The notes under the pieces were generated by a model. That model was not told the DNA's origin, did no database searches, and worked only from the letters and a program-made list of their open reading frames with translations. Positions 1,889 to 55,832 of a stretch of DNA of 64,000 bases are shown here, piece by piece. Where the stretch lies: positions 3,100,001-3,164,000 of the forward strand of contig OZ218950.1 in assembly GCA_965112735.1 (NCBI GenBank). The letters run 5' to 3'. The translations under genes and the position numbers were made by a program. Origin of the DNA: Phaeosaccion multiseriatum. Taxonomy: Eukaryota > Protista > Ochrophyta, other classes. Positions within the stretch are counted from its first letter, which is position 1. Every line of letters starts with the position of its first letter.

Positions 1889-3569
1889 ATGGCCCCGAGC
1901 AGGGCTCTTGCTGCGGCACTTGCAGCAACGGGAGCGCTACTGGTTGTTACCTGGAAAAGGGCGAAGCAAGCGAGACTGCAAGCATCCAGGAGGATTTTGA
2001 AAGGGTGGAGTGAGGTGCAGCAAAAGGATCCTCAAGGGCCGCCGAGCTCACAGCGCGTTCCCGTCGTTGATCTACGAAGGTGGGGCTTCTCTCACACTTT
2101 CTTACACAGCCTGGGCAGGGTCCTTCGAGATATCTCGCGACCCTTTGGGAGCTAAGCACCCTTCCTGCTTTTTTCTGTCCTTTTCATTTCTCGTGCGCAA
2201 ACTCCAACCCAGTGATGTCGACTTTGTTCAACGTCGGCTGGTGGGCTCCTGCAGCATACCGGCCGAAATTCTATGGACAGAGGACTGGTGGTTCTCACTG
2301 CCGGATAAGAAGCAGCCCTTTGTGTTGCTACTGCCCAGGAGGGAGTGGAGGGCCCTGTACGCGAAGCTCCTATTGGCCAGGCCAGATGCTGCAGGCAATG
2401 ACTTGTAATGCACGAGAATGGTCACGCTCTGTGAATCTCTGAGTGGTGCTCGACTAACCTCTCGTCCCCACACTCTCCTCCATTCCCTGCTCGTGTGCCC
2501 CATACCCAGGAAACTTGCTCCTTCTGGATACCCCCGAGCTGTGGCAGGCGGCTGACGAGCAGGGACTGCTGATATCCGGGGCGGTGTCACCCCAGGAGCG
2601 TCGCGAAGGTCTGTTTTTCGAGCCGTGCCCCTTTCTGGCGCGCATCGTGAGCGGGCTGGAGGAGGTGCTGCTGGCGACTGCGAGGGAGGGAGAGCAGGAG
2701 GTGGAGGAAGAGCACCCCACTCAGCAGTATAGACTCAAGGCGCGGCAGACCCCCCTGACCTGTCTCGACGTGGGCTGCGGAAGGTGAGAGAAACAGGAGA
2801 GAGACGCGTGGGAGCGGGTCATGAAAAGTCGCCCTTCTGACGGGGCGGCAGAAGGTTCTTGGGAGGGGGCGAGGAGAGTAGCAGGGACAGCAGGGCAAGG
2901 GTCCAGCAAAGCTCCGTAAAGGGAACATCGGAAGAGCTCGGCTCCATGTGTGACTCCGACGCTTTGTGTGGCACAGACCATTGACGGGCCAGACCATCTC
3001 CGCGCCGCCCCACTTGCTGCTTCCCCACTACCCCCTCTTGCTCCCCCTCGCGCTCCCGTAGCGGGAGGGACGTGGCCTACCTGGCTTGTCGCGGCTGGAC
3101 GGTGACGGGGGTGGACTGCTGGTCACGCGTGTTGGACCGCACTCGGCGCCTCGCGGAGAGAGCAGGCGTGAAGGAGAGGGTTGAGGTGAGGAGAAAGAGG
3201 AGGACAGTCGTGAATGTCGACGAGAGATGGAGGGAGAAGGGCGTATGTGTGTGTGTATGTGTGTGTGTATGTGTGTGTGTGTGTGTGTGAGACAGAGAGA
3301 GAGAGAGAGGGAGGGAGGAAGAGGTAGAGGGAGAGCTGGAAGGGGGAGGCCAACAGAATGTCGAAGCACCTGCTGAAACTCCCCCCCCCCCCCCTTCCCT
3401 CATGCCGACACAATTCTCCTCCGGCTGATTCCAAACTTTTCAGCGCCTAACCTTCTCGCTTGTCCTCGCTTGTCTCGCATCACAGACGTGGCAGGGGAAG
3501 GTCACCCCCAGCGGCACCTTGCAGCTAGCCGCAGAGCACGGGAGGGGCGTCCGGACACTCGGCATCTCG

Positions 3570-7728: not shown

Positions 7729-8983
7729 GGAGGTTGAGGGCGCAGTCGTGAGGACGCCAAGGCGGAGGGGTAGAGAGGGGATGCGCTGTAATGGCGCTCG
7801 CTAGTTCACAGGACACATCAAGACAGCGGGGGAAGGGGGGCGTATCGTCTCCTATGGGGGGGCTGCACAGTCAAGCAAGCTGGACTCTCACTCTCAGTCT
7901 TCCCTTCGCTGCAGCCCCCGGCCATTATTGCGGCGGGCGAGAGAGTAGCTTTCGCCCACAGTACCGCACAGCGCTAGTCGGAGGGGGTGCAGGGCGACGT
8001 GGCAGGTATGAATTTCAAGTGGCCTCAGAGGTGCTATGGGCACAGCCATCTCTCCGCTTGGCGCCTTCACTGCCCCAGCCACTGGGACTCGGGTCGGGTA
8101 TGGTACGCAAGATTAGGCAGCAAAGGATCGGTGGTCAACGCATCGGAGTAGTGAAGAAGGAGAAAGGCCCTTGCCCGAGGGGACATCGCCGTGTGCCCTG
8201 AGCAGGAGAGGGCTTTCTCCGCGCGACTGTCTGTGAGAGAAGGAATATGCAAAGCGCGACCTTCCCCTGGCCTTGGTCTCCTCCGGGCTGGTTCAGCAGC
8301 GTGGGGCTGTCGTGGCGAGCTGTGTGGTGAGCTGCGGCGTGACCTGTCGCCCCCCCCCCCACAGGCCTGAGCCATGGCACAGACGAGAGAAGAAGGAGTG
8401 CCTGGTCGGTCTGCATGTATTCTTCCACTCTACATTCTCATCTACCTTCGTGAGGAAGAACGGGGTTCGATATCAAAGGGCCAGCAACCCGGCGTGGTGG
8501 GAAGCTGCAGCAGCAGTATAGTCTTAGAAGCGGCCCACAGTTGCAGTGCCCAGTCAATGAAAGGGTGCGGCCGCCTTCCCCCCTTTGCGAAAACACGCAG
8601 CAGGAGTTGGAGGCCACAGACTGAGACTATTTCCCACGGCCGTAGATTTAGGTGGCCAGACCTGCAATGCTGCCTACAGTTTTCATTTGGAGCCAGGTTA
8701 CCAAAATTCTTTTCCCTTTTTACCTCTTCACACTGGCGAAGTTGGGTCCCCACGCCTTCGGGCGTGTGGGTGATAAATCGGTGGGCTCCGTCTGCTGAGT
8801 TCAGTCGGCGGCGCTGGATGTAGGTCGCCTGATGGAGCTGCCTGCAGGAGGGCTTTTTCCTGTGCAAAATCTAGGCGCAGCTGTGACGAGGGTTGGGAAC
8901 TTAATTGACTTAATAGGAAAGCGGGTGTGGGGGGGGGGGAGGGTAAGAGGAATCACCTGAGAAACTATTGATGACCGGTTTTG

Positions 8984-9060
8984 GTGGGGCGAGATGCCCC
9001 ACTCGGTGAAAGTGGGTATTTTTAGTACCCAATTTTTTTAAAAGTGGGTATTTTTAGTAC
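8984..9060. repeat. Crypton left subterminal structure: GTGGGGC-N5-GCCCCAC hairpin (8984-9002) and 20-bp direct repeat AAAGTGGGTATTTTTAGTAC (9009-9028, 9041-9060)
   Basis: Read directly; the same structure is in copy 2 at +11511. Confidence 0.85.
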
Positions 9061-9208
9061 AGTACCCAATATGGACCAGTAGCGCCCCTCCCCCCCCCCC
9101 TCCTTTTTGGTGTATCTCTCCCCTCCTCCTCCAAAATATACTACGCTATGATATGACGATTTAATGGTATTACCACGATAACAATGGTATTCATATTTAC
9201 AGACACAC

Positions 9209-9593
9209 TTAGTGTCCGTCCTCAATCATGCATGGCATACAGTAGTAGTCAAAATCGCCTTCCGCAAAACCCTTGCTGTCGCAAAACTCGACGGTGCACA
9301 TGTGGTGCACGAGGTTTCCACACGCTCTTTCGGATGGGCAGAGGAACAGCTTGACTTGCGAGGGCTTAGTACAGCCATACGAGCATGTGAAGGCCATGTC
9401 TCCCTCTCTCAAGCCGCCCAACGACGGCGCTGCTGACGCGGCAGCAGCGGCAGTAGCGGCCGCAGCGGCCGCATCAGAGGCAGCAGCAGAAGCAGCATCA
9501 GAAGCAGTACCAGTACCAGTACGCTGTTTTTTTTGGGCCCCCCTTCCCCCACCCCTTCCTCCTCGTCCTCCTCCGGCTCCGCCTCCTCCTGTT

Positions 9594-9630
<37 letters not shown>

Positions 9631-12272
9631 TGCTGCTGCCACCTCCCTCCTCGTCGTCCTCTGCACCGCTATCACCTCCATCCCCCTCCTTCGACTCGTC
9701 TGCACCAGTGCCACTTTCCTTCGCCCTCGCCCGCTTCGCCCGTTTTTTCGCGTCCGCCTGCTGCGCGCTCCATAAATTATACACGGTGGTCCACACCAGC
9801 TGATTGAAGCGGCGCTTGTGAGAATCAGAACGAGACTTGATGTCAAAGGCGTCTTTGACTGCGTCAAACATGCTTCGCGCTTCTTCAAGCGTCGGCTTGT
9901 CCTTCCAGAGCCCCTTTTCTTTCGCCGCGGATTCAATCGCACCCATCAAACAGCAAAATTTTGACATCCTTCGCTTCTCCGCCCTCCCCTGCACGTCTGC
10001 TGTCGTGAATTCTCGAAGGCGAGGAGTGCCTGTCATCCAAGCATCCCAAGCAGCGCGCACAGTGAAGCTAGGGACCTCAAAGTGCTCGGGAAGGGTATGC
10101 CACCGGCCGTTGTAGAGATACAGAGGTGGCTGATCTGCACCTGCACAAGAAGAAGAAGAGGGCGGGGCGCTGCTCGAACCCTCACCAAGGCCCAGAGTGC
10201 CTGCCTGGTGAGCCGCGAGAAGGTCGCTGAGCCCACTCTTAGAAAAGGCTGCGTCGAGGGTCGTCTGCAGGGCCCTGCTCACACCCAGACTGGTGACAGT
10301 GCCAGAGGCCTGTGCATTCTCCTCCAGAACGTCACGGATCAGCGTCTCCAAGTCGACCTTGATCGTCTGGCCCAACACCTCAAGCTTGCCGCCTAGAGAG
10401 GCCACGCTGTCCGCCACGACTTGGAATTGCCTCAGCTGCACGACGTGGGGAGGAATCCCGGTTGCAGAAATCTCGTCCGTCTCGTCCGGATACTTCAGCA
10501 CGACATGCTCTGAAAGGTCCGCCAGCAACCTTTGATCTCGGAAGAGCTGTGTCGTGAAAAGAGGGTGATTCTCCTGAAGAGTGCTGCGCAGAAAGCCGGC
10601 GTGGTACACCACACTGGCAAGACAGAATTCAGCCACCTTCCTCAATCTCAGCGGCACGTCCCTGAAGCAGCTCACAATGGCTCCCGCGAGCACGTCTTCA
10701 ATGCCCTCCTTCGCTGTGCCGTCCACCTTGAGGCGCTGAAAAAAGGGAGGAAGCAATGCAAACTCCTTCGCTGAGATGTTCGCCCCGGAGGCAGCCCGGC
10801 CCACATACTGATCTGCTGCATTGATGGGGTTGAAGTAGATGCCCTGGACGCCGGGAAGAGACCATCCCATTCGAAGTTGCACAGCAATTGGGTTGGGAGC
10901 AGCGGACGAGCCGCTTGTGACGTGCGAGGCAGCGCCCTTGCGCCCAGAATGAGTGCCGAGGTCCTCTGGAGTCAGCCCCATGCCTTCCAAAATGGACGAG
11001 TTCGCCGCCGCCGTACGTCTGAGGAAGCCGCAATACCTATCGTACTGATTGTTGCCAGCGAACAGCGCGTTCTTCTCAAAACCAAAGCTCAGGAGGTAAA
11101 CACCAAGCGCGAGGACGGGGCAGATCTCCGGCATGATTGGATTCGCGTAGACGTGGCGAGGATGTCGGGCCTTCTCTCCCAGCTGGTCGCCCTTTTGCTT
11201 CCCAAAATAGACGCAGAGCGCGTCCCCCTTCCACTCGAGATGATCGAGACAAATCTCCACACAGTTGGTGGCGCGGCACATCAGATTCCAGGAGAGAACG
11301 AGGAAGGGGTGGCCAAAGGCGCCCTGTCTGTGCCCGTTCTCACAGACTGCCGAGCTCAGCATTGCTGCGATGTACACAAGCGAAGGAAACAGTGGCAACC
11401 AAAGACGGCGTCAGGGCTAGGAAGTGAGTGGGGGGCAGTCAATGCATCAGCCACTTGTCTCCACCCACTCCACTAGTTTCCACTGTCCACTGACTCCACA
11501 CAGCTGGGAATTTACCTTTGGCAAGAGCGCGGTAGAGAGCGAACGGCATGGGAGCCTTCCCTTCTCTGACTTCGACATTTCCCTCCTGCTTCTCTCCTGC
11601 GATCGTCCTCTTCAGCCCCTTGGTGAGCGTCGCAAGGTCGCTTTGCAATTTGCGGTGCTGCTCCTCCTGATGGTAGTCTCTGTACAGATTGAAGAGTGCA
11701 GAGCGTTTCGACTGTGCACCGGCCTTGGATAAGCCCTTCGGCCCCTTCTTGACTTCAAGCAGCCACCCGAAGAACGCGTCGGCTGTCAGCAGATGGAACA
11801 GCAAAGGGTGCGGCGCCCGAGGTGCTTGGATCAAGTGTGCCTTCACCCGCTTCGTCCACTGCGCCTCAGCCTTCTTCTTGGCCTTTGCTTGGGCTTTCGC
11901 TGCTCTCGACACCTCAGCCGGCGTCTGCTGTGCCGCTGCAGTGGCACCACCCGCTCCGCCAGGTGCGGCGGCTGCTGCGGCTGCTGCTGCTCTCCTCTGT
12001 GCTTCCTCCTCTTCCCCATCTTCCCCGTCTTCCTCCTCTTCCCCCTCCGGTGGAGCAAATGCTGTCCTGAAGTCAGGGTCCAGAAGCTCCGGGTGCTTGC
12101 GGAAGAGGTATCGGATCAGCATCGTGGAGGCGCATGCATATCCACTTCTCGAGCGTGGGGCGATGGTGTTGTTTCGGGGGTTCTGAATCTGCTGCTGCTC
12201 TGCAGTAAGCGGTGCTTCTTCCCCCTCTGCTGCTGGTGCTTCCGGAACCGTAGCAACAGCGACGTCAGCCAT
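9209..12272 (-). CDS. Crypton tyrosine recombinase with C-terminal PHD-like zinc finger, about 970 aa; exons 12272-11516 and 11364-9209
   Basis: Phase-1 GT-AG intron 11515-11365 joins MPFALYRALAK to AMLSS...; catalytic set R (WNLMCR), K (QKGDQ), HxxR (THSGRK), W (MGW), Y (QGIYF); C-terminal Cx3C-x10-Cx5C-x4-Hx2C-x18-Cx2C. Confidence 0.9.
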
Positions 12273-12492
12273 GGTATACTCTGTTCTCCTGCAAATTCAC
12301 GTGGGAGATGCCCCTCCCACCACTGGCATCAGCTGTTACAGCCGGGTATCGTCCGCGCAGCCGCTGCTCCTCTTACATAGCTGCACTGTGCAAATATGCT
12401 GATGCTGTGAATGAAATAAACTCCACGTGGGGAGGGGGGGGAGAATGCCCCACAACCAAAAAATATTGGATAAAAAACTTGAAAAACGAGCA

Positions 12493-12545
12493 TTTATGGC
12501 CCATAAAATATCCAAAACAATTATTTCGTGGGGCAGGTGCCCCAC
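12493..12545. repeat. Crypton right subterminal structure: TTTATGG-C-CCATAAA inverted repeat (12493-12507) and GTGGGGC-N4-GCCCCAC hairpin (12528-12545)
   Basis: Read directly; the same structure is in copy 2 at +11508. Confidence 0.85.
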
Positions 12546-12769
12546 TTCACGGTACTATTAGACATACGGACTACAGAGAACTGAAACTGAAAGTGTGTGT
12601 TGGGTTGGGTGGTGTGCCACAGGAGACGACGCCCCTCACGCGTTGGTGCTCCAATTTTTTTCTTTTCTTTTTTTTGTGTTACAAAGACGCGAGGCATCGA
12701 GAACTGAGCCGCCCCTAACGGGGGCTAATAAAGAGACCCAGACTGTACTAGTCAAAACACACCCTGATC

Positions 12770-20390: not shown

Positions 20391-20470
20391 ATGTGTCTTG
20401 TTTGTTGGTCGCCCAGTTGTAGGAGAGGAGCGAGGGGAAAATACTTTATTGACTTAATAGGAATCACCTA

Positions 20471-21104
20471 AGAAACTATTGATGACCGGTTTTGGTGGGG
20501 CGAGATGCCCCACTCGGTGAAAGTGGGTATTTTTAGTACCCAATTTTTTTAAAAGTGGGTATTTTTAGTACAGTACCCAATATGGACCAGTAGCGCCCCT
20601 CCCCCCCCCCCTCCTTTTTGGTGTATCTCTCCCCTCCTCCTCCAAAATATACTACGCTATGATATGACGATTTAATGGTATTACCACGATAACAATGGTA
20701 TTCATATTTACAGACACACTTAGTGTCCGTCCTCAATCATGCATGGCATACAGTAGTAGTCAAAATCGCCTTCCGCAAAACCCTTGCTGTCGCAAAACTC
20801 GACGGTGCACATGTGGTGCACGAGGTTTCCACACGCTCTTTCGGATGGGCAGAGGAACAGCTTGACTTGCGAGGGCTTAGTACAGCCATACGAGCATGTG
20901 AAGGCCATGTCTCCCTCTCTCAAGCCGCCCAACGACGGCGCTGCTGACGCGGCAGCAGCGGCAGTAGCGGCCGCAGCGGCCGCATCAGAGGCAGCAGCAG
21001 AAGCAGCATCAGAAGCAGTACCAGTACCAGTACGCTGTTTTTTTTGGGCCCCCCTTCCCCCACCCCTTCCTCCTCGTCCTCCTCCGGCTCCGCCTCCTCC
21101 TGTT

Positions 21105-21138
<34 letters not shown>

Positions 21139-24094
21139 TGCTGCTGCCACCTCCCTCCTCGTCGTCCTCTGCACCGCTATCACCTCCATCCCCCTCCTTC
21201 GACTCGTCTGCACCAGTGCCACTTTCCTTCGCCCTCGCCCGCTTCGCCCGTTTTTTCGCGTCCGCCTGCTGCGCGCTCCATAAATTATACACGGTGGTCC
21301 ACACCAGCTGATTGAAGCGGCGCTTGTGAGAATCAGAACGAGACTTGATGTCAAAGGCGTCTTTGACTGCGTCAAACATGCTTCGCGCTTCTTCAAGCGT
21401 CGGCTTGTCCTTCCAGAGCCCCTTTTCTTTCGCCGCGGATTCAATCGCACCCATCAAACAGCAAAATTTTGACATCCTTCGCTTCTCCGCCCTCCCCTGC
21501 ACGTCTGCTGTCGTGAATTCTCGAAGGCGAGGAGTGCCTGTCATCCAAGCATCCCAAGCAGCGCGCACAGTGAAGCTAGGGACCTCAAAGTGCTCGGGAA
21601 GGGTATGCCACCGGCCGTTGTAGAGATACAGAGGTGGCTGATCTGCACCTGCACAAGAAGAAGAAGAGGGCGGGGCGCTGCTCGAACCCTCACCAAGGCC
21701 CAGAGTGCCTGCCTGGTGAGCCGCGAGAAGGTCGCTGAGCCCACTCTTAGAAAAGGCTGCGTCGAGGGTCGTCTGCAGGGCCCTGCTCACACCCAGACTG
21801 GTGACAGTGCCAGAGGCCTGTGCATTCTCCTCCAGAACGTCACGGATCAGCGTCTCCAAGTCGACCTTGATCGTCTGGCCCAACACCTCAAGCTTGCCGC
21901 CTAGAGAGGCCACGCTGTCCGCCACGACTTGGAATTGCCTCAGCTGCACGACGTGGGGAGGAATCCCGGTTGCAGAAATCTCGTCCGTCTCGTCCGGATA
22001 CTTCAGCACGACATGCTCTGAAAGGTCCGCCAGCAACCTTTGATCTCGGAAGAGCTGTGTCGTGAAAAGAGGGTGATTCTCCTGAAGAGTGCTGCGCAGA
22101 AAGCCGGCGTGGTACACCACACTGGCAAGACAGAATTCAGCCACCTTCCTCAATCTCAGCGGCACGTCCCTGAAGCAGCTCACAATGGCTCCCGCGAGCA
22201 CGTCTTCAATGCCCTCCTTCGCTGTGCCGTCCACCTTGAGGCGCTGAAAAAAGGGAGGAAGCAATGCAAACTCCTTCGCTGAGATGTTCGCCCCGGAGGC
22301 AGCCCGGCCCACATACTGATCTGCTGCATTGATGGGGTTGAAGTAGATGCCCTGGACGCCGGGAAGAGACCATCCCATTCGAAGTTGCACAGCAATTGGG
22401 TTGGGAGCAGCGGACGAGCCGCTTGTGACGTGCGAGGCAGCGCCCTTGCGCCCAGAATGAGTGCCGAGGTCCTCTGGAGTCAGCCCCATGCCTTCCAAAA
22501 TGGACGAGTTCGCCGCCGCCGTACGTCTGAGGAAGCCGCAATACCTATCGTACTGATTGTTGCCAGCGAACAGCGCGTTCTTCTCAAAACCAAAGCTCAG
22601 GAGGTAAACACCAAGCGCGAGGACGGGGCAGATCTCCGGCATGATTGGATTCGCGTAGACGTGGCGAGGATGTCGGGCCTTCTCTCCCAGCTGGTCGCCC
22701 TTTTGCTTCCCAAAATAGACGCAGAGCGCGTCCCCCTTCCACTCGAGATGATCGAGACAAATCTCCACACAGTTGGTGGCGCGGCACATCAGATTCCAGG
22801 AGAGAACGAGGAAGGGGTGGCCAAAGGCGCCCTGTCTGTGCCCGTTCTCACAGACTGCCGAGCTCAGCATTGCTGCGATGTACACAAGCGAAGGAAACAG
22901 TGGCAACCAAAGACGGCGTCAGGGCTAGGAAGTGAGTGGGGGGCAGTCAATGCATCAGCCACTTGTCTCCACCCACTCCACTAGTTTCCACTGTCCACTG
23001 ACTCCACACAGCTGGGAATTTACCTTTGGCAAGAGCGCGGTAGAGAGCGAACGGCATGGGAGCCTTCCCTTCTCTGACTTCGACATTTCCCTCCTGCTTC
23101 TCTCCTGCGATCGTCCTCTTCAGCCCCTTGGTGAGCGTCGCAAGGTCGCTTTGCAATTTGCGGTGCTGCTCCTCCTGATGGTAGTCTCTGTACAGATTGA
23201 AGAGTGCAGAGCGTTTCGACTGTGCACCGGCCTTGGATAAGCCCTTCGGCCCCTTCTTGACTTCAAGCAGCCACCCGAAGAACGCGTCGGCTGTCAGCAG
23301 ATGGAACAGCAAAGGGTGCGGCGCCCGAGGTGCTTGGATCAAGTGTGCCTTCACCCGCTTCGTCCACTGCGCCTCAGCCTTCTTCTTGGCCTTTGCTTGG
23401 GCTTTCGCTGCTCTCGACACCTCAGCCGGCGTCTGCTGTGCCGCTGCAGTGGCACCACCCGCTCCGCCAGGTGCGGCGGCTGCTGCGGCTGCTGCTGCTC
23501 TCCTCTGTGCTTCCTCCTCTTCCCCATCTTCCCCGTCTTCCTCCTCTTCCCCCTCCGGTGGAGCAAATGCTGTCCTGAAGTCAGGGTCCAGAAGCTCCGG
23601 GTGCTTGCGGAAGAGGTATCGGATCAGCATCGTGGAGGCGCATGCATATCCACTTCTCGAGCGTGGGGCGATGGTGTTGTTTCGGGGGTTCTGAATCTGC
23701 TGCTGCTCTGCAGTAAGCGGTGCTTCTTCCCCCTCTGCTGCTGGTGCTTCCGGAACCGTAGCAACAGCGACGTCAGCCATGGTATACTCTGTTCTCCTGC
23801 AAATTCACGTGGGAGATGCCCCTCCCACCACTGGCATCAGCTGTTACAGCCGGGTATCGTCCGCGCAGCCGCTGCTCCTCTTACATAGCTGCACTGTGCA
23901 AATATGCTGATGCTGTGAATGAAATAAACTCCACGTGGGGAGGGGGGGGAGAATGCCCCACAACCAAAAAATATTGGATAAAAAACTTGAAAAACGAGCA
24001 TTTATGGCCCATAAAATATCCAAAACAATTATTTCGTGGGGCAGGTGCCCCACTTCACGGTACTATTAGACATACGGACTACAGAGAACTGAAA
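20471..24094 (-). mobile_element. Crypton-type tyrosine-recombinase DNA transposon, copy 2
   Basis: Same orientation and sequence as copy 1 except one fewer unit in a (CAG)n tract; ORF translations in the different frames are otherwise identical. Confidence 0.9.
20720..23780 (-). CDS. Crypton tyrosine recombinase with PHD-like finger, about 969 aa; exons 23780-23024 and 22872-20720
   Basis: Identical to the copy 1 protein apart from one Ala in a poly-Ala tract. Confidence 0.9.
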
Positions 24095-24404
24095 GTGTGA
24101 AAGTGTGTGTGTGTGTGTGTGTGTGTGTAGGTGTCGCTGTGTCTCCGGGGCCCGCGAGGGGCCGGTTACTCCCCCTCTAGGGCGGGGAGGGGGAGTGCGG
24201 GACCGGCTCCGCGGTTGAGCCGGCCCAGGAAGGCGCGCTGCAGCGAGGGGAAAAGAAAAGAGAACAAATTGCAAATGTCAACTGCAAGTGAAGAACCAAC
24301 GTGAATTTCGGGCCACTTGCTTGATTCGGCCCACAAAGCCGTGGAGGGTAGAGGGCTCCTTCTTGAGGGCTGTGAGGCAGCGTTTAGACAAATCATTCGT
24401 TCAG

Positions 24405-28244: not shown

Positions 28245-44423
<16,179 letters not shown>

Positions 44424-44902: not shown

Positions 44903-47496
44903 ATGGCCGCTGAGGTGGAGAGTGGGGAAGGAGCCGAAACCACGGACAAGTTGAAGGGCCCTGTTGTCGGAACCGAACAAGAAGACGGGACATTTGGAGA
45001 CGAGGCGTGCGGAGAGCACACGCCCTTCCCCCTGACCGATGTTTTGGTGGCGTCGTGCCTCCTCTTCCTTTCCACCTCGGACCTCATCAACTACCGGGGC
45101 GTGGCCCGCTCCACAAGGAAGGTCTTCGCGGCCTCCACACACGGGCTCCTGCACAGCCGGAGGTTGTTGAGAGACATTGAACACCTCAACGAGCTGCTCA
45201 AGATCCTGTCCAGTCTGGGGGAGGGCAGTGGGGAGGAGGAGGAGCAAGAGGATGTCAATGCTGCGCACCAGCATGACCTCGTAGATGTGGTGCATCGGGC
45301 CGCCACATCCACCTCGCCGACGCGGAGTCGCTCGCGCAGCGCAGCATCAACAACCCGCAGGCAGAGAGATTGTTCCCAACATCAGCAGGAGGAAAGGGAA
45401 GAGCAGCAGAAGAACGGGGAGGCCTTGGTTTCCCCGCCCTCCTCTCCTGTGCCTCTGGAGCAGCCACAGGCACTGACTGAGGAGCCCTCGAACCAGACCA
45501 ACCAAAATCCAGGAGGGGAGCACACGCAGGCTCCCCACAGTTCCACCGATGGTACGGTCGTGCACCACCAGAGAACCACTTCGAGGCCCATTCTGAGCAT
45601 CGGACATAAGGGCGCTCCCGGAGACGGGCGCACCTTCCACGGCAACACCATCGCCTCCTTTGTCGAGGCGGTGCGTCTCGGGGTCGACATTATTGAATTC
45701 GACCTTGTCTCTACCAGCGACGGAGGCCTGCTGTGCCACCACGACCCCATGGACGAGGAGAGTGGCAGGTGGTTCGGCGAGATGCGCATGTCGGAGGCCC
45801 GCAAGATCCTGCCGCCTGACGTGGCGTCGCTCGAGGATCTGCTGCGTTGCAAGCATCTGCGCGACGCCGAGCACGTCGGTCTTTACTTCGACCTCAAGGT
45901 AGGTGGGGTAGGTTAGGGTAGGGTAGGTGTGCGGTGCTGTGCCGTGCCGTGTAGAAAGGCGAAGCCAACCATATTTTTTTAACCTGTGTGCTGAACTAAC
46001 TCCCTCCCCCCCCCCCCCGTCGTCCGACCCGAAGTTCCGAATCTTAACCACCGACCCCCCCCCCCCCTCTTTCCCCTCCCCCTTCTCCCTCCCCCCCCAC
46101 AGCATACCAACATCGTAAAGCCCACCATGGCCATGATCCTGCGTGCCGTGACGGAGTGGGGCTGGGCCCCCGAGCGAGTCATCGTGGGCACCTTCAAGCA
46201 GATTGAGCTGCTCGAGATCAACGCATGGAGACGCTCTCACACAGAGCTGGCCACCATAAAGACAGTCTGCATCATCGACGCGGTACGTCGAGTCGCTTCA
46301 GTGGGCACGCTCACCGCACCCCTTTGTGTCGTCCCCCTTGTGTCTTACAAGCGTGTCTCTCTGTCTCTCTCTCGTTTATGAACCGCCTGGCTGATCACCT
46401 CCCCCCCCCCGCATCGCCCGCCCCGCCCTCGCTCCACCCTACCCAACCCTCTATGCTATCACAGGTGCCCATGTCCTTCGCTCGCGACTTTGAGGCCCTT
46501 CAAGTGTCAGCCCTGTCCATCGGTCTGAGCTGCGTCTTTCCCGAGTTTGTTGCCGACTGCCACCGTCGAGGCATTAGCGTCTACGTGTGGACCGTGAACA
46601 ACGAATTCATGATGGAGCGCCTTCTTGCCCTCAACGTCGACGGGGTGTGCACGGACTACCCTTTGCGTCTCGCGGCAGCGGTGGAGAAGCTCCAGCAGCA
46701 GAAGCAGAAGCAGGAGAAGGAGAAGGAGCACCTCGGGAAGGAGGAGGGGGAGTGGATTTCCATACCCCCCGTGCTGCACCGCATCAAACAGGAGCAGTGC
46801 CAGCAGCAGCAAGAGACGGGCAGCGAGGAGGAGAGGGCCGTTGGGGCGAGCGAGAGTGGCGGCAGCTGCGGCGAAGAGAGTGACGGTCTAGACTCGTGGC
46901 ACAGTGGGGGGGAGAGGAAGGGTGCCCCCGAGAAGGGCGAGAAGGAGGAGGAGGAAGAGGAAGAGAAGGCAGAGACCCTGCTGTCTCTGCTGTATAACAG
47001 CAACGCCCTTCGGGGCATTCGCAAGCAACTCGTGAGCCTTATGGAGGAAGCACGCAGCCTGCTCTCCCTCTGCAAACTCGACGCAGTTGTGGGCTCCTGC
47101 CTTGATACGGAGACAAAACACGCCCTCAAGGTGATGCTGGTGGCAGCCGAGCAGGGCGCCTCTACGGTGGTGGAGCACCTAAAGACGGGGCGGTGGGGGG
47201 CGGGGCTGGTCAGGTCCCTGTGTAACAGTAAGGTTGGGAGGGAGCTGCTGCTGTCTGTGGCCTCCAAGGACAAGAAGGGGGCTGTCTACACCGCCGCCAA
47301 CCCCACGGGGGAAGGGAGCAGTAGCAGCAGCAGCAGGAGTGGTGATGGGTGGGGCTTCTCGAAGGGGAACGGGGCGGATTCTCCGTGTCAACCCAAGAGG
47401 AAGGGCTCGATGCTTCCCATCGAGAAGGAGTGGGTCCAGTCCTGGGCGGACCAGGCACTTGCTGCGGACATGAAGAAGAAGCAGCAACAGCAACAA

Positions 47497-47527
<31 letters not shown>

Positions 47528-47574
47528 GGCAGAGTGCGAGGAGTGCGCAGGGTGTGGGCTGTGCACAGGACTAG
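44903..47574 (+). CDS. Glycerophosphodiester phosphodiesterase (GDPD) family protein with N-terminal F-box-like motif; exons 44903-45898, 46103-46282, 46465-47574
   Basis: IGHKG, NTIASF, IEFDL..TSDG..CHHD, YFDLK, VYVWTVN, VDGVCTDYP; in-frame GT-AG introns. Confidence 0.85.
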
Positions 47575-53129: not shown

Positions 53130-55411
53130 ATGGCTTCGTTTGGTGACGATCAAGAACAGCTGCTGAACTCCGTATCTTACGCATGTGCGGCAATCAGCTT
53201 CTGCAGCAGCTGCATCGTCGTTGCCAGCTACTACAGGTTCAAGTCGGTGAGTAGTCTGAGACCTTATGTCTCCCCCCCCTCCTACTGCCTGACTATCGGC
53301 CAGAGCAGCGGCGTGACAGAGCACGGCACGCCAAGCAAACAAGCAAGCAAAGCAAGCAATCAAGCACACTTTCCCTTTTCCCCTGGCGTTCCTCGCTTGG
53401 CCGTACTTCCCTTCCTCGCCACGACACCTTGCTCACGCTGGACCTTGACATCTCCTTTCTTGCCCCCCTCCTCTCCCGCCCTCCTCCGCCCTCACTGCCG
53501 CAGCTTCGAAAGTTCGCCTGCAGCCTCGTCGCTTGTCTTGCTGTGGCAGACATCGGTGCTAACCTCTCCTACTTTTTGGGTAATCCCAAGGACCCGTCGA
53601 TTCGCTGCAGTCTTCAAGCGGGTAAGAAAGGACAAGGTTTTTGTCTTCCACGATAGCTTGCCCTCCCAATGATTCGTCTTCGCTCCGCCGCAGCCTTTCT
53701 CCTGGCGTTGGCCTCCTCTCTGATTTCGCCTCTCATAGTCCCCTCCACACTCTGACCCCCCGCCCTTTGCTTCCCACTGTGTGCATGATGATTTGTATCG
53801 TAGTTTTGCAGCAGTTCTTTCAGGTGGCCCTCATCCAATGGACGGTGGTGATTGCCTACTCTATGCACCTCGTCACGACGGCCTTCAGCAAGTTCGACGT
53901 CTCGAAGCGAATGCCTTACTATCATGTGTGGTACGTATCGTATGGCGCGACATCCCCCCCTTCCTTCCTTCCTTCCCTCCAGGCTCTCTTCCAAATCTGG
54001 CTGGCCCCTCTTACCCCACACACTGTCCACTGTCTCTCATCTCTCTCCGGTGCCTCCCTTCGACCGACCCTCACCTCACCCCACCCCCTCTGTCTCCTGT
54101 TGTCCCCCAAAGGTGCTACGGTGTGGCGGCGTTGCTCACCATCGCCCCCACCCTCACCAGCTCGTACGGGCAGAGCGGCGCCTGGTGCTGGATCAAGGGG
54201 GACCACATGGGCTCGTATCAGCGCATGGCCTCCTTCTATATACCGCTCTGGATCAGGTGCGGGCGCGTGTGTGGGTGTGTGGATGGGTGGGTGGGTGGGC
54301 TGAGCGGACTTGCTTACCTGCTGTTCTGGCGCGCTCCTTGGCTTTTGAAAGGTCTTGTCTCGCTCTCTCCTCGCGCCCCGTCTTTCCATCAGCTAGCTCC
54401 CTTGCTAGAATCAAATATTGGTGATGTGTCTTCTGTCTCCCTTGAAACACCAAAGTCTCATCCACGACTCTTGTTCTTTCCCGTACCCCTCTCGCCCCCC
54501 TCCCCCCCCTCCCCCATTGTGCTCCTTGCTCTCCGCTGGGCGGATGACGGCGGACGGGGGGCACGCAGTATGATGTACATCATTGTCATGTGGTTTAAAG
54601 TCGTTCGCTCCTTGCGAGAGAAGAGTTTGGAGTTTATTGATGAGCCCATAGGGGGAGAGGATTATGACAACGACGAACTCGGCGAGGAAGGTGAAGGTGA
54701 GACCAGGAATGGCTCGGACGGACACCACAAGAGAGGGAGGTCCCTGAGCATTGGCAGGAAACGGCGAGGTAGCAGATCTAGGTCCGGGACAAAAGACAAC
54801 GGGACCACCTCAAGAGGGCGGAGTTTGACCGCTTCGTCTACTCCCAAGAGCTCCCCGTATGGCTCTCGGAGGCCGTCCGAGTCTCGCACGGGCACACCGA
54901 AAAGTAGAAGTGGTTCTGGGCCCCGGAGGAGCTTGACCCCATCTCGCCGGGCGAGCGTGAACGATGATGTGGAGGACAGCAACCGACGCATTCGGGCCTT
55001 TATGAACCGCATCAAGGTCTTCCCGGTCATTTTTGTGTTTTGCTGGCTCTTCGCCTCCATCAACCGCGTGCAGAACATTATCCAGCCCGACAAGCCAATC
55101 TTTGCGCTTTTCCTGCTGCAGGCGGTGAGCGTCCGCATCCAGGGCTTTCTCAACGCCTTGGCCTATGGCATCAATTTCTCCACCTCCTGGTCCGCCAAGA
55201 GCCGCCTCATTCGCGTACAGGAGAAGTGCGGCTCGGCCAATGTGTGCTGTGGTCTGTGCGCTCTGCTCGCAAGGGTGTTTGGCTGCTGTGGGTGTTGTGC
55301 TGTGATGCACGATGACGACGATAATGATGATGGTGATGATGTGCACGACGAAGGAGGCGCAAGAGGGGAGAGAGGGCGGGGGGGGGAGAAGGCCGCGGCA
55401 GCGGCAGCCGC

Positions 55412-55443
<32 letters not shown>

Positions 55444-55832
55444 TGGAGGAAGGGAGCTCAGGGGACAGTGACCACCATGGCCATGGAGGAATAGGGGACG
55501 GAAAGCGTCGCAAGGGCAGCGGGGTGGGAGAAGGCGCGGGGCTGAAACGACCTCCTTCGAATGTGAGCAACGTGTCGTTTGGAGGGCCAGGCCCAGGTCA
55601 TCGTTATGACGGAGAAGAGCCCCCTCACCATCCGCACCCGCAGGAGGTTGCAGTGGTTCGGGCCGACCCTGCTTTGGTGCGGGCCGCTGCTGCCCAGTTG
55701 GGGGTGGAGATTATGGGAGCGGGTGCGGGGGGCGGGGGGGAGGACGCAGAGGGGCAGACTCTCATCGGTCCAGCGGCAGCCAAGCCCAAGAAGAAGTACA
55801 GAAACTTGCTTAGGCGCAATAGTAAGAAATGA
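53130..55832 (+). CDS. GCR1 / cAMP-receptor-like 7TM G-protein-coupled receptor, multi-exon
   Basis: Seven hydrophobic segments; LRKF..LV..LAVAD, C.LQA..QFF, YGQSGAWCWI, FYIPLW, FP.IFVFCWLFASINR, QGFLNALAYG. Confidence 0.85.

Follow-up and report, generated by a model that had tools for sequence, protein, structure and literature searches.

Described Cryptons and recombination enzymes with appended modules

Of the classes of DNA transposons in eukaryotes, Cryptons are, to our knowledge, the one that is least understood. The element described here is a Crypton that occurs twice in a 64,000-nucleotide stretch of the genome of the ochrophyte Phaeosaccion multiseriatum (contig OZ218950.1, positions 3,100,001 to 3,164,000; this whole stretch is referred to here as the window, and all coordinates are counted from its first letter), and its only gene encodes a tyrosine recombinase that terminates in a Cys/His-rich module. 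An appended module of this kind has parallels in other classes of integrating enzyme; in the chromoviruses (Ty3/Gypsy), for instance, the C-terminus of the integrase carries a chromodomain. PHD fingers have been found appended to DDE transposases, i.e. those of Ginger1-9_HM and Mutator (Bao et al. 2010, PMC2836005). Among Cryptons, the CryptonS group is found in stramenopile hosts, lacks GCR1_C and is characterised by a conserved C-terminal region and 5–6-bp terminal direct repeats, with TATGG as a common terminus (PMC3212892), while the CryptonF group carries GCR1_C (Kojima & Jurka 2011, PMC3212892). Published Crypton accessory domains comprise GCR1_C, C48 peptidase, HTH and DDE (PMC3212892; PMC13465315), DUF3504 also being present in the literature, and C48 peptidases have been published for both CryptonS and CryptonF elements (PMC3212892). 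An active Crypton of Chlamydomonas reinhardtii, CryptonF-1_cRei, exhibits an insertion bias towards 5′ untranslated regions (Lopez-Cortegano et al. 2023, PMC9977147).

The P. multiseriatum element resembles the CryptonS elements of oomycetes and diatoms in its single tyrosine-recombinase gene, the lack of GCR1_C, a conserved post-catalytic region, short terminal repeats, a stramenopile host and nearest relatives in oomycetes. It differs from these elements in its ends, which are GAAACT rather than TATGG, in a protein that is ~270 aa longer than its typical relatives and has a lineage-specific N-terminus, and in the presence of a linker and a Cys8His3 finger. Features in common with CryptonF-1_cRei are signs of present-day activity, a short motif at the ends that corresponds to the target, and insertion near genes. 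However, CryptonF-1_cRei belongs to the CryptonF group, with its GCR1_C DNA-binding domain, has a CACCG/CAYCG core, and was seen to be active in mutation-accumulation lines, whereas activity is deduced here from the identity of the copies and a spliced transcript.

The Ginger1 and Mutator transposases and RAG2 are comparable in that a small C-terminal C4HC3 finger is joined to a DNA-recombination enzyme, and such a finger is often situated beside, or alternates with, OTU/Ulp1 protease domains, as is the case among the relatives of the present Crypton. In contrast, these are DDE enzymes whose PHD fingers are recognised by standard models, while the present enzyme is a tyrosine recombinase with a finger that is not recognised by Pfam and that lacks the cage Trp. 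The chromodomain integrases of chromoviruses are alike in concept only, as they too place a chromatin-binding module at the C-terminus of an integrating enzyme; they represent another enzyme class, with another reader fold, in a retrotransposon, and the module described here is known from sequence only.

Two copies of an intact and recently mobile Crypton

Self-comparison of the window revealed a single long repeat (8944–12615 versus 20455–24128; direct orientation, 99.6% identity, 3677 bp). In a base-by-base alignment across 8960–12586, the sole difference between the two copies was a 3-bp GCA indel at 9594–9596, located in a poly-Ala-coding tract that specifies 12 residues in copy 1 and, with one GCA unit fewer, 11 in copy 2, so that the exon-2 open reading frames (ORFs) comprise 729 and 728 codons, respectively. 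An earlier note on this DNA had reported two virtually identical copies, and they are indeed one GCA unit apart over ~3.6 kb. The linker in which this tract lies is a microsatellite and changes faster than the remainder of the element.

Copy 1 (8961–12588, minus strand) extends over ~3.62 kb, from a left to a right 6-bp terminal direct repeat, GAAACT (8961–8966 and 12583–12588), which represents a candidate crossover core. Copy 2 (20472–24096, minus strand) is the same apart from the missing GCA unit, and is bounded by GAAACT (20472–20477) and GAAAGT (24091–24096). Counting one repeat, the element measures 3622 bp (copy 1) or 3619 bp (copy 2), and no long terminal repeats, direct or inverted, were detected within the 3.6 kb. 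Four public runs of one sample, labelled X1 to X4 and with run types not on record, were found to hold the element. Contigs of these runs exit the element at 8962–8966 and 12582–12590 into several unrelated flanks, and the family therefore has further copies that share the same ends.

The element falls within the definition of a Crypton because it combines a tyrosine-recombinase fold with 6-bp terminal repeats and has no match to GCR1_C, DUF3504 or reverse transcriptase. It is an intact, autonomous, young, transcribed and recently mobile Crypton DNA transposon of an ochrophyte genome. The description in the earlier note of an intact, recently active Crypton was thus upheld, by an open gene of 970 aa, a complete active site, near-identical copies and a contig that resembles a spliced transcript.

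Gene structure, splicing and transcription

Each copy contains one two-exon gene on the minus strand. In copy 1, the coding sequence (2913 nt, 970 aa) runs from an ATG at 12272 to a stop at 9211–9209 and is free of internal stops. Exon 1 (11516–12272) encodes aa 1–252 and the first base of codon 253, and ends at the border AAAG/GTAAAT; exon 2 (9209–11364) begins after CGCAG and ends with the stop codon. Residues 1–139 are lineage-specific and acidic/Ala-rich, as relatives align only from around aa 140, upstream of the catalytic domain.

The two exons are separated by a phase 1 spliceosomal intron of 151 nt (11365–11515, GT..AG). A 2794-nt contig of run X2 spans 9659–11364 and then 11516–12550, thereby omitting exactly 11365–11515, with GT..AG on the coding strand, which confirms the intron that had been noticed earlier. 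In runs X3 and X4, the contigs are unspliced. This is most simply explained if X2 represents a cDNA-type library and the gene therefore undergoes transcription and splicing. A further contig of X2 extends over 8965–9470, the finger included, and continuity of the linker over 9471–9658, a repeat region skipped in read mapping, rests on the open frame.

Eight positions of the coding sequence vary among the copies present in the runs, six of these variants being synonymous and two non-synonymous. The only variant within the finger is at position 9237, where most run copies have T instead of A; the resulting M962K change alters the last zinc knuckle from C-M-P-C to C-K-P-C and concerns a non-ligand residue. 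Such an excess of synonymous variants would be typical of a family whose functional copies are the source of new ones.

Recombinase core and classification

The catalytic domain (aa 254–470; 10712–11362, minus strand) contains the complete set of catalytic residues that the earlier note had listed as R-K-HxxR-W-Y, namely R283, K310, H391-x-x-R394, W420 and Y429, each retained in 28 or more of the 30 relatives in an alignment. In the same alignment, Y439, the tyrosine of a DQY motif, is variable; because Y429 is conserved, it is Y429 rather than Y439 that is assigned as the nucleophile. Y429 is located nine residues past W420, and this W-to-Y spacing equals that of Cre.

An AlphaFold model of aa 254–478 built on 110 sequences reached a pLDDT (predicted local distance difference test) of 90.4, and all of the best 50 Foldseek matches to this model in the Protein Data Bank (PDB) were tyrosine recombinases (Flp, XerH, Cre, Tn1549 Int, XerA and phage integrases). 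When normalised to the query, their TM-scores were mostly 0.41–0.57. The recombinase domain was not recognised in Pfam or PDB sequence searches with exon 2 or a 30-sequence family profile.

A search with the exon-2 protein yielded 180 relatives (E-values down to 1e-103, 30–43% identity), many of which are encoded on short environmental contigs. Named relatives are from Phytophthora, Globisporangium and Aphanomyces, and others were derived from protist data. These relatives, typically of ~700 aa, align to aa 140–785 of the 970 residues, and most stop within ~20 residues of position 785. The alignable part accordingly includes a conserved post-catalytic region (aa 471–785; 9767–10711, minus strand), which is common to oomycete and protist relatives and does not contain GCR1_C.

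No Pfam match to GCR1_C, DUF3504 or reverse transcriptase was obtained for any part of the protein. DIRS and Ngaro elements were ruled out, as there is neither a reverse-transcriptase domain nor long repeats, and so were CryptonA, given the lack of a DUF3504 match, and CryptonF, given the lack of a GCR1_C match. The element would best fit CryptonS, an assignment based on its similarity to unannotated oomycete proteins and on the published description of that group.

A C-terminal Cys/His module without a known counterpart

Residue 785 is followed by a tail of 185 residues that is missing from the relatives. This tail consists, in order, of the basic stretch KKRAKRARAK, an acidic patch, A12, GGRGGRGGGRG, an Ala/Ser-rich stretch and the Cys/His module. 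The part preceding the module is a lineage-specific linker (aa 786–905; 9407–9766, minus strand), in which the Ala/Gly/RGG composition and the basic stretch resembling a nuclear localisation signal that had been noted earlier were all found. The module itself (aa 906–970; 9212–9406, minus strand) is a Cys8His3 zinc-finger-like sequence in which the predicted ligands, from C913 to C964 (9230–9385), are arranged as C913-x3-C917-x10-C928-x5-C934-x4-H939-x2-C942-x18-C961-x2-C964, i.e. in C4HC3 order over a span of 52 residues, with C947, H940 and H970 as spare potential ligands.

The module is real coding sequence and not a chance pattern, because it is enriched in Cys, its pattern is specific, and its codon bias is like that of the rest of the gene. 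Eight Cys residues are present in the last 66 aa, compared with a Cys content of 1.4% in the remainder of the protein; the corresponding binomial tail of 5e-7 was computed for at least nine Cys and is somewhat larger for the eight observed. In 79,000 residues of six-frame ORFs from the window, a loose C4HC3 pattern matched only the two Crypton copies. The GC content at codon positions 1, 2 and 3 is 0.49, 0.43 and 0.68 in the finger, compared with 0.60, 0.47 and 0.70 in the recombinase domain.

A Cys-rich tail was not observed in any of the 120 listed protein relatives, nor was a comparable finger found on either strand of 67 distant metagenomic loci encoding relatives, which had been retrieved by an alignment-based scan. 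Likewise, no description of a Crypton with a PHD or other zinc finger was found in the papers searched, Repbase and Dfam being outside this search; the legend of a figure in the Chlamydomonas paper (PMC9977147) mentions a PHD domain among active elements, which is not attributable to a Crypton. The remark in the earlier note that this was not a familiar Crypton architecture was thus borne out to this extent, and a Crypton recombinase with a predicted C-terminal C4HC3-ordered module appears to be a variant without counterpart among the searched relatives and literature.

Certain relatives carry other C-terminal or adjacent modules. In P0043, P0047, P0048 and P0049, four proteins among the longer relatives, the last 230–300 aa, which follow the core, match an OTU cysteine protease, two of these matches being above the Pfam cutoff and two just below. 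At another locus (L039, metagenome contig Ga0209712_10055229), a separate 91-aa ORF at 2081–2356 (plus strand), situated 157 bp downstream of the recombinase gene and on the same strand, encodes a genuine C3HC4 RING finger according to Pfam, with no similarity to the Cys8His3 module of the Crypton. Together, the OTU tails and this RING finger suggest that the clade may repeatedly recruit ubiquitin-system or cross-brace modules.

Insertion sites and target sequence

Both copies were shown to reside in similar sequence. The left host flanks (8944–8960 and 20455–20471) share TAA(G/T)AGGAATCACCT(G/A)A, amounting to ~20 bp of likeness, and the right host flanks (12589–12600 and 24097–24110) have GAAAGTGTGTGT in common, which results in a target pattern for the two copies of AGGAATCACCT..GAAA(C/G)T..GAAAGTGTG. 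This likeness beyond the 6-bp core suggests a preferred, dispersed target sequence. The short GAAA(C/G)T core may nonetheless suffice as a target, since the flanks of other copies in the reads are unrelated.

The earlier note had proposed that insertion is guided to promoters, based on the position of both copies just upstream of genes. This position is literally true but uninformative: only two insertions are available, in a compact genome, and copy 1 lies in an intergenic gap of only ~330 bp, so that a location upstream of a gene was unavoidable. Promoter guidance is therefore unsupported, and target choice appears to be directed by sequence, because both copies share the flank as well as the GAAA(C/G)T core; a site-specific recombinase would be expected to behave in this way.

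Several further sequence features were observed around the ends. At copy 1, a partial second TTGACTTAATAGGA is present ~30 bp further left of the left flank. Near the 3′ end of the element, an exact 20-bp direct repeat (AAAGTGGGTATTTTTAGTAC) occurs at 9009–9028 and 9041–9060, and GCCCCAC-containing motifs are located near both ends (8987–9003, 12434–12453 and 12530–12546); these subterminal repeats are candidate recombinase-binding sites. In addition, a low-depth contig of run X1 connects 8966 directly with 12583, apart from a single additional G in between. It could stem from a site, at this locus or one like it, that is empty or has lost the element by excision, or else from a variant right end.

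Possible affinity of the module to PHD fingers

The identification of the C-terminus as a PHD finger, as put forward in the earlier note, was retained in part. The eight ligands of the C4-H-C3 pattern are all present (C913, C917, C928, C934, H939, C942, C961 and C964), and both x4-H-x2-C and the final C-x2-C fit PHD spacing. The canonical PHD spacing is C-x2-C, C-x2-4-C, x4-5, H-x2-C and C-x2-C. The gap of four residues between ligands 4 and 5 and the H-x2-C element agree better with PHD than with RING or RING-CH fingers, as do the hydrophobic run VKLFL before C928 and the aromatic Y959 two residues before C961. RING-CH and C1 domains were rejected as candidates for the finger, as the spacing was unfit and no N-terminal His is present.

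In an ESM Atlas feature search, the nearest clusters were PHD fingers, with a Pygopus-type cluster first, at scores of 0.90 for a 70-aa construct and 0.88 for a 62-aa construct. When the main PHD families were excluded from the same search, the best scores were 0.77 (PHD_pln), 0.76 (RING) and 0.76 (UBR). The module would thus most likely represent a PHD-type cross-brace finger that holds two zinc ions and in which the first two knuckles are enlarged.

Sequence-based searches provided no further assistance. A word-indexed search limited to the finger region gave five candidates, none of which was scored, and in scans of metagenome and viral contigs neither the protein nor the finger had any close relative, so that no finger alignment could be made. 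A PHD-type fold is consequently to be regarded as a lead rather than a result, with the balance of the evidence tilting slightly in its favour.

Proposed mechanism and alternative roles of the tail

The account that we favour, and hold to be probable, is that of a young CryptonS-like element which integrates in a core-directed manner and in which the PHD-type tail serves as a flexibly tethered docking module. The recombinase would excise or copy the element via a junction carrying the GAAACT core, after which site-specific recombination would insert it into GAAA(C/G)T-like targets, in line with the junction model for Cryptons (Goodwin et al. 2003, as summarised in PMC9977147). The target would be determined mainly by the sequence of core and flank. 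The finger, on its disordered linker, would bind a nuclear-protein or chromatin partner, and would influence the place or the time of recombinase action without defining the target.

A number of findings weigh against this account, most of them concerning the nature of the finger. Its first two knuckles, C-x3-C and C-x5-C, exceed canonical PHD spacing. The language-model scores do not exceed 0.9, a level that the search tool takes as no more than a lead, and the number of shared features (155–164) is below the 170 typical of true members. HMMER had been suggested as a check, yet none of three finger constructs matched any Pfam zinc-finger or PHD model (PF00628 included), even at E≤10, and a phmmer search of PDB sequences with the finger returned no match and hence no PHD chain. 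Against 1.84 billion representatives, phmmer produced only two matches, both of them internally repetitive proteins without zinc fingers and neither of them credible. Structure prediction, the other check that had been suggested, yielded no usable fold, as the single-sequence AlphaFold model of the finger alone had a pLDDT of 44 and was not used for a fold search. Furthermore, all copies are too similar to one another for any selection on the finger to become apparent, and the CryptonS assignment was derived from similarity to unannotated oomycete proteins.

Of the other roles conceivable for the tail, the one that survives best, although unlikely, is that of a RING-like or other cross-brace finger acting in the ubiquitin/SUMO system (E3-type or E2-docking), which, instead of reading chromatin, would act on the recombinase or on host factors by modifying or protecting them. 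Such a role would parallel the OTU, C48/Ulp1 and RING accessories of related elements, given that several relatives possess a C-terminal OTU domain, that the relative at L039 is followed by its RING ORF at 157 bp, and that C48 peptidases are published for CryptonS and CryptonF (PMC3212892). The RING clusters of the feature search, however, scored 0.76 compared with 0.88–0.90 for PHD clusters. C4HC3 is also the ligand order of RING-CH ligases, but the four-residue gap between ligands 4 and 5 is unlike that of RING (2–3) or RING-CH (7) fingers. Pfam RING models moreover recognise the L039 ORF with ease and fail to recognise the Crypton module, which has no similarity to that RING finger.

The role originally envisaged for the tail was that of a reader of the histone H3 tail, of the H3K4me3 type as in RAG2, that tethers the recombinase to promoter chromatin and causes insertions to accumulate upstream of genes. 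The C4HC3 ligand order, the PHD language-model neighbours with the Pygopus-type cluster at their head, and the location of both copies between genes, in short stretches that face plus-strand ORFs on their 5′ side, are in agreement with such a reader. In the fingers of BPTF, ING2, Pygo and RAG2, a cage Trp is found two residues before the ligand His; the corresponding residue here is Leu937, and the acidic cluster used by readers of unmodified H3K4 is lacking as well. The module thus probably does not read H3K4me3 via a canonical aromatic cage, and the proposed analogy with RAG2 fails at this residue. As regards insertion, the ~20-bp left flank and the GAAAGTGTGTGT right flank shared around GAAA(C/G)T indicate a choice by sequence, and just two insertions in a gene-dense region are at hand. 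A promoter bias also does not need a PHD finger, because the Chlamydomonas element, the one Crypton for which such a bias has been measured, is a CryptonF with GCR1_C. Tethering to promoters by an H3 reader is consequently considered improbable.

Equally doubtful is a DNA-binding zinc finger that recognises the subterminal repeats or the extended target, with a role in specificity such as that of GCR1_C in CryptonF. The similar extended target sequence at both copies, the subterminal repeats at both ends (the 20-bp repeat and the GCCCCAC motifs) and the adjoining RGG box and basic patches, which suit nucleic-acid binding, are compatible with this role. The finger itself is not basic, though, and cross-brace C4HC3 fingers are mostly protein binders; relatives without a finger presumably recognise their sites through the conserved N-terminal and aa 471–785 regions.

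That the tail is a recently acquired neutral extension, arisen by read-through into captured or de novo sequence and binding metal incidentally or not at all, is very improbable. The tail does lack relatives in sequence, the low-complexity tract in front of it resembles a microsatellite and differs between the copies, and the family is too young for visible selection. However, eight ordered ligands with PHD-like spacing would hardly arise by chance, the codon bias is that of the rest of the gene, the transcribed copies retain the tail, and the sole finger variant spares the ligands.

Neighbouring genes and host

Host genes on the plus strand were observed downstream, at 30437–31819, 32841–36689, 44903–47571 and 53781–55829, and include a calpain, a large EF-hand protein, a split GDPD phosphodiesterase and a cAMP-receptor-like G-protein-coupled receptor. 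A Pfam search of the flanking ORFs produced only a PPR repeat and a weak SR-25 match. The best named relatives of the neighbouring calpain gene are from Phaeothamnion and Ochromonadaceae (~40% identity) and, because these are ochrophytes, the host is a photosynthetic stramenopile. At this level of identity, it appears to have no close sequenced relative in the protein collection.

Implications for Crypton biology

Should the tail prove to be merely a divergent orphan finger, the element would represent an ordinary young CryptonS-like family. In the most far-reaching case, which we consider unlikely, it would be the first tyrosine-recombinase transposon with its own reader of chromatin or nuclear proteins, a divergent PHD-type finger on a flexible RGG linker that biases integration to particular chromatin, e.g. 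gene-proximal regions. If true, this would constitute a convergent counterpart of the PHD finger of RAG2 and the chromoviral chromodomains, and extend the principle to a third class of enzyme. Were the tail to prove a chromatin- or protein-docking reader, it would add tyrosine recombinases to the enzymes with independently acquired guides, and could suggest designs for programmable recombinases.

Crypton activity was seen directly only in 2023. An intact, expressed and evidently mobile copy provides a workable model for target choice by a eukaryotic tyrosine recombinase, and its zinc-finger tail offers a natural experiment in recombinase tethering.

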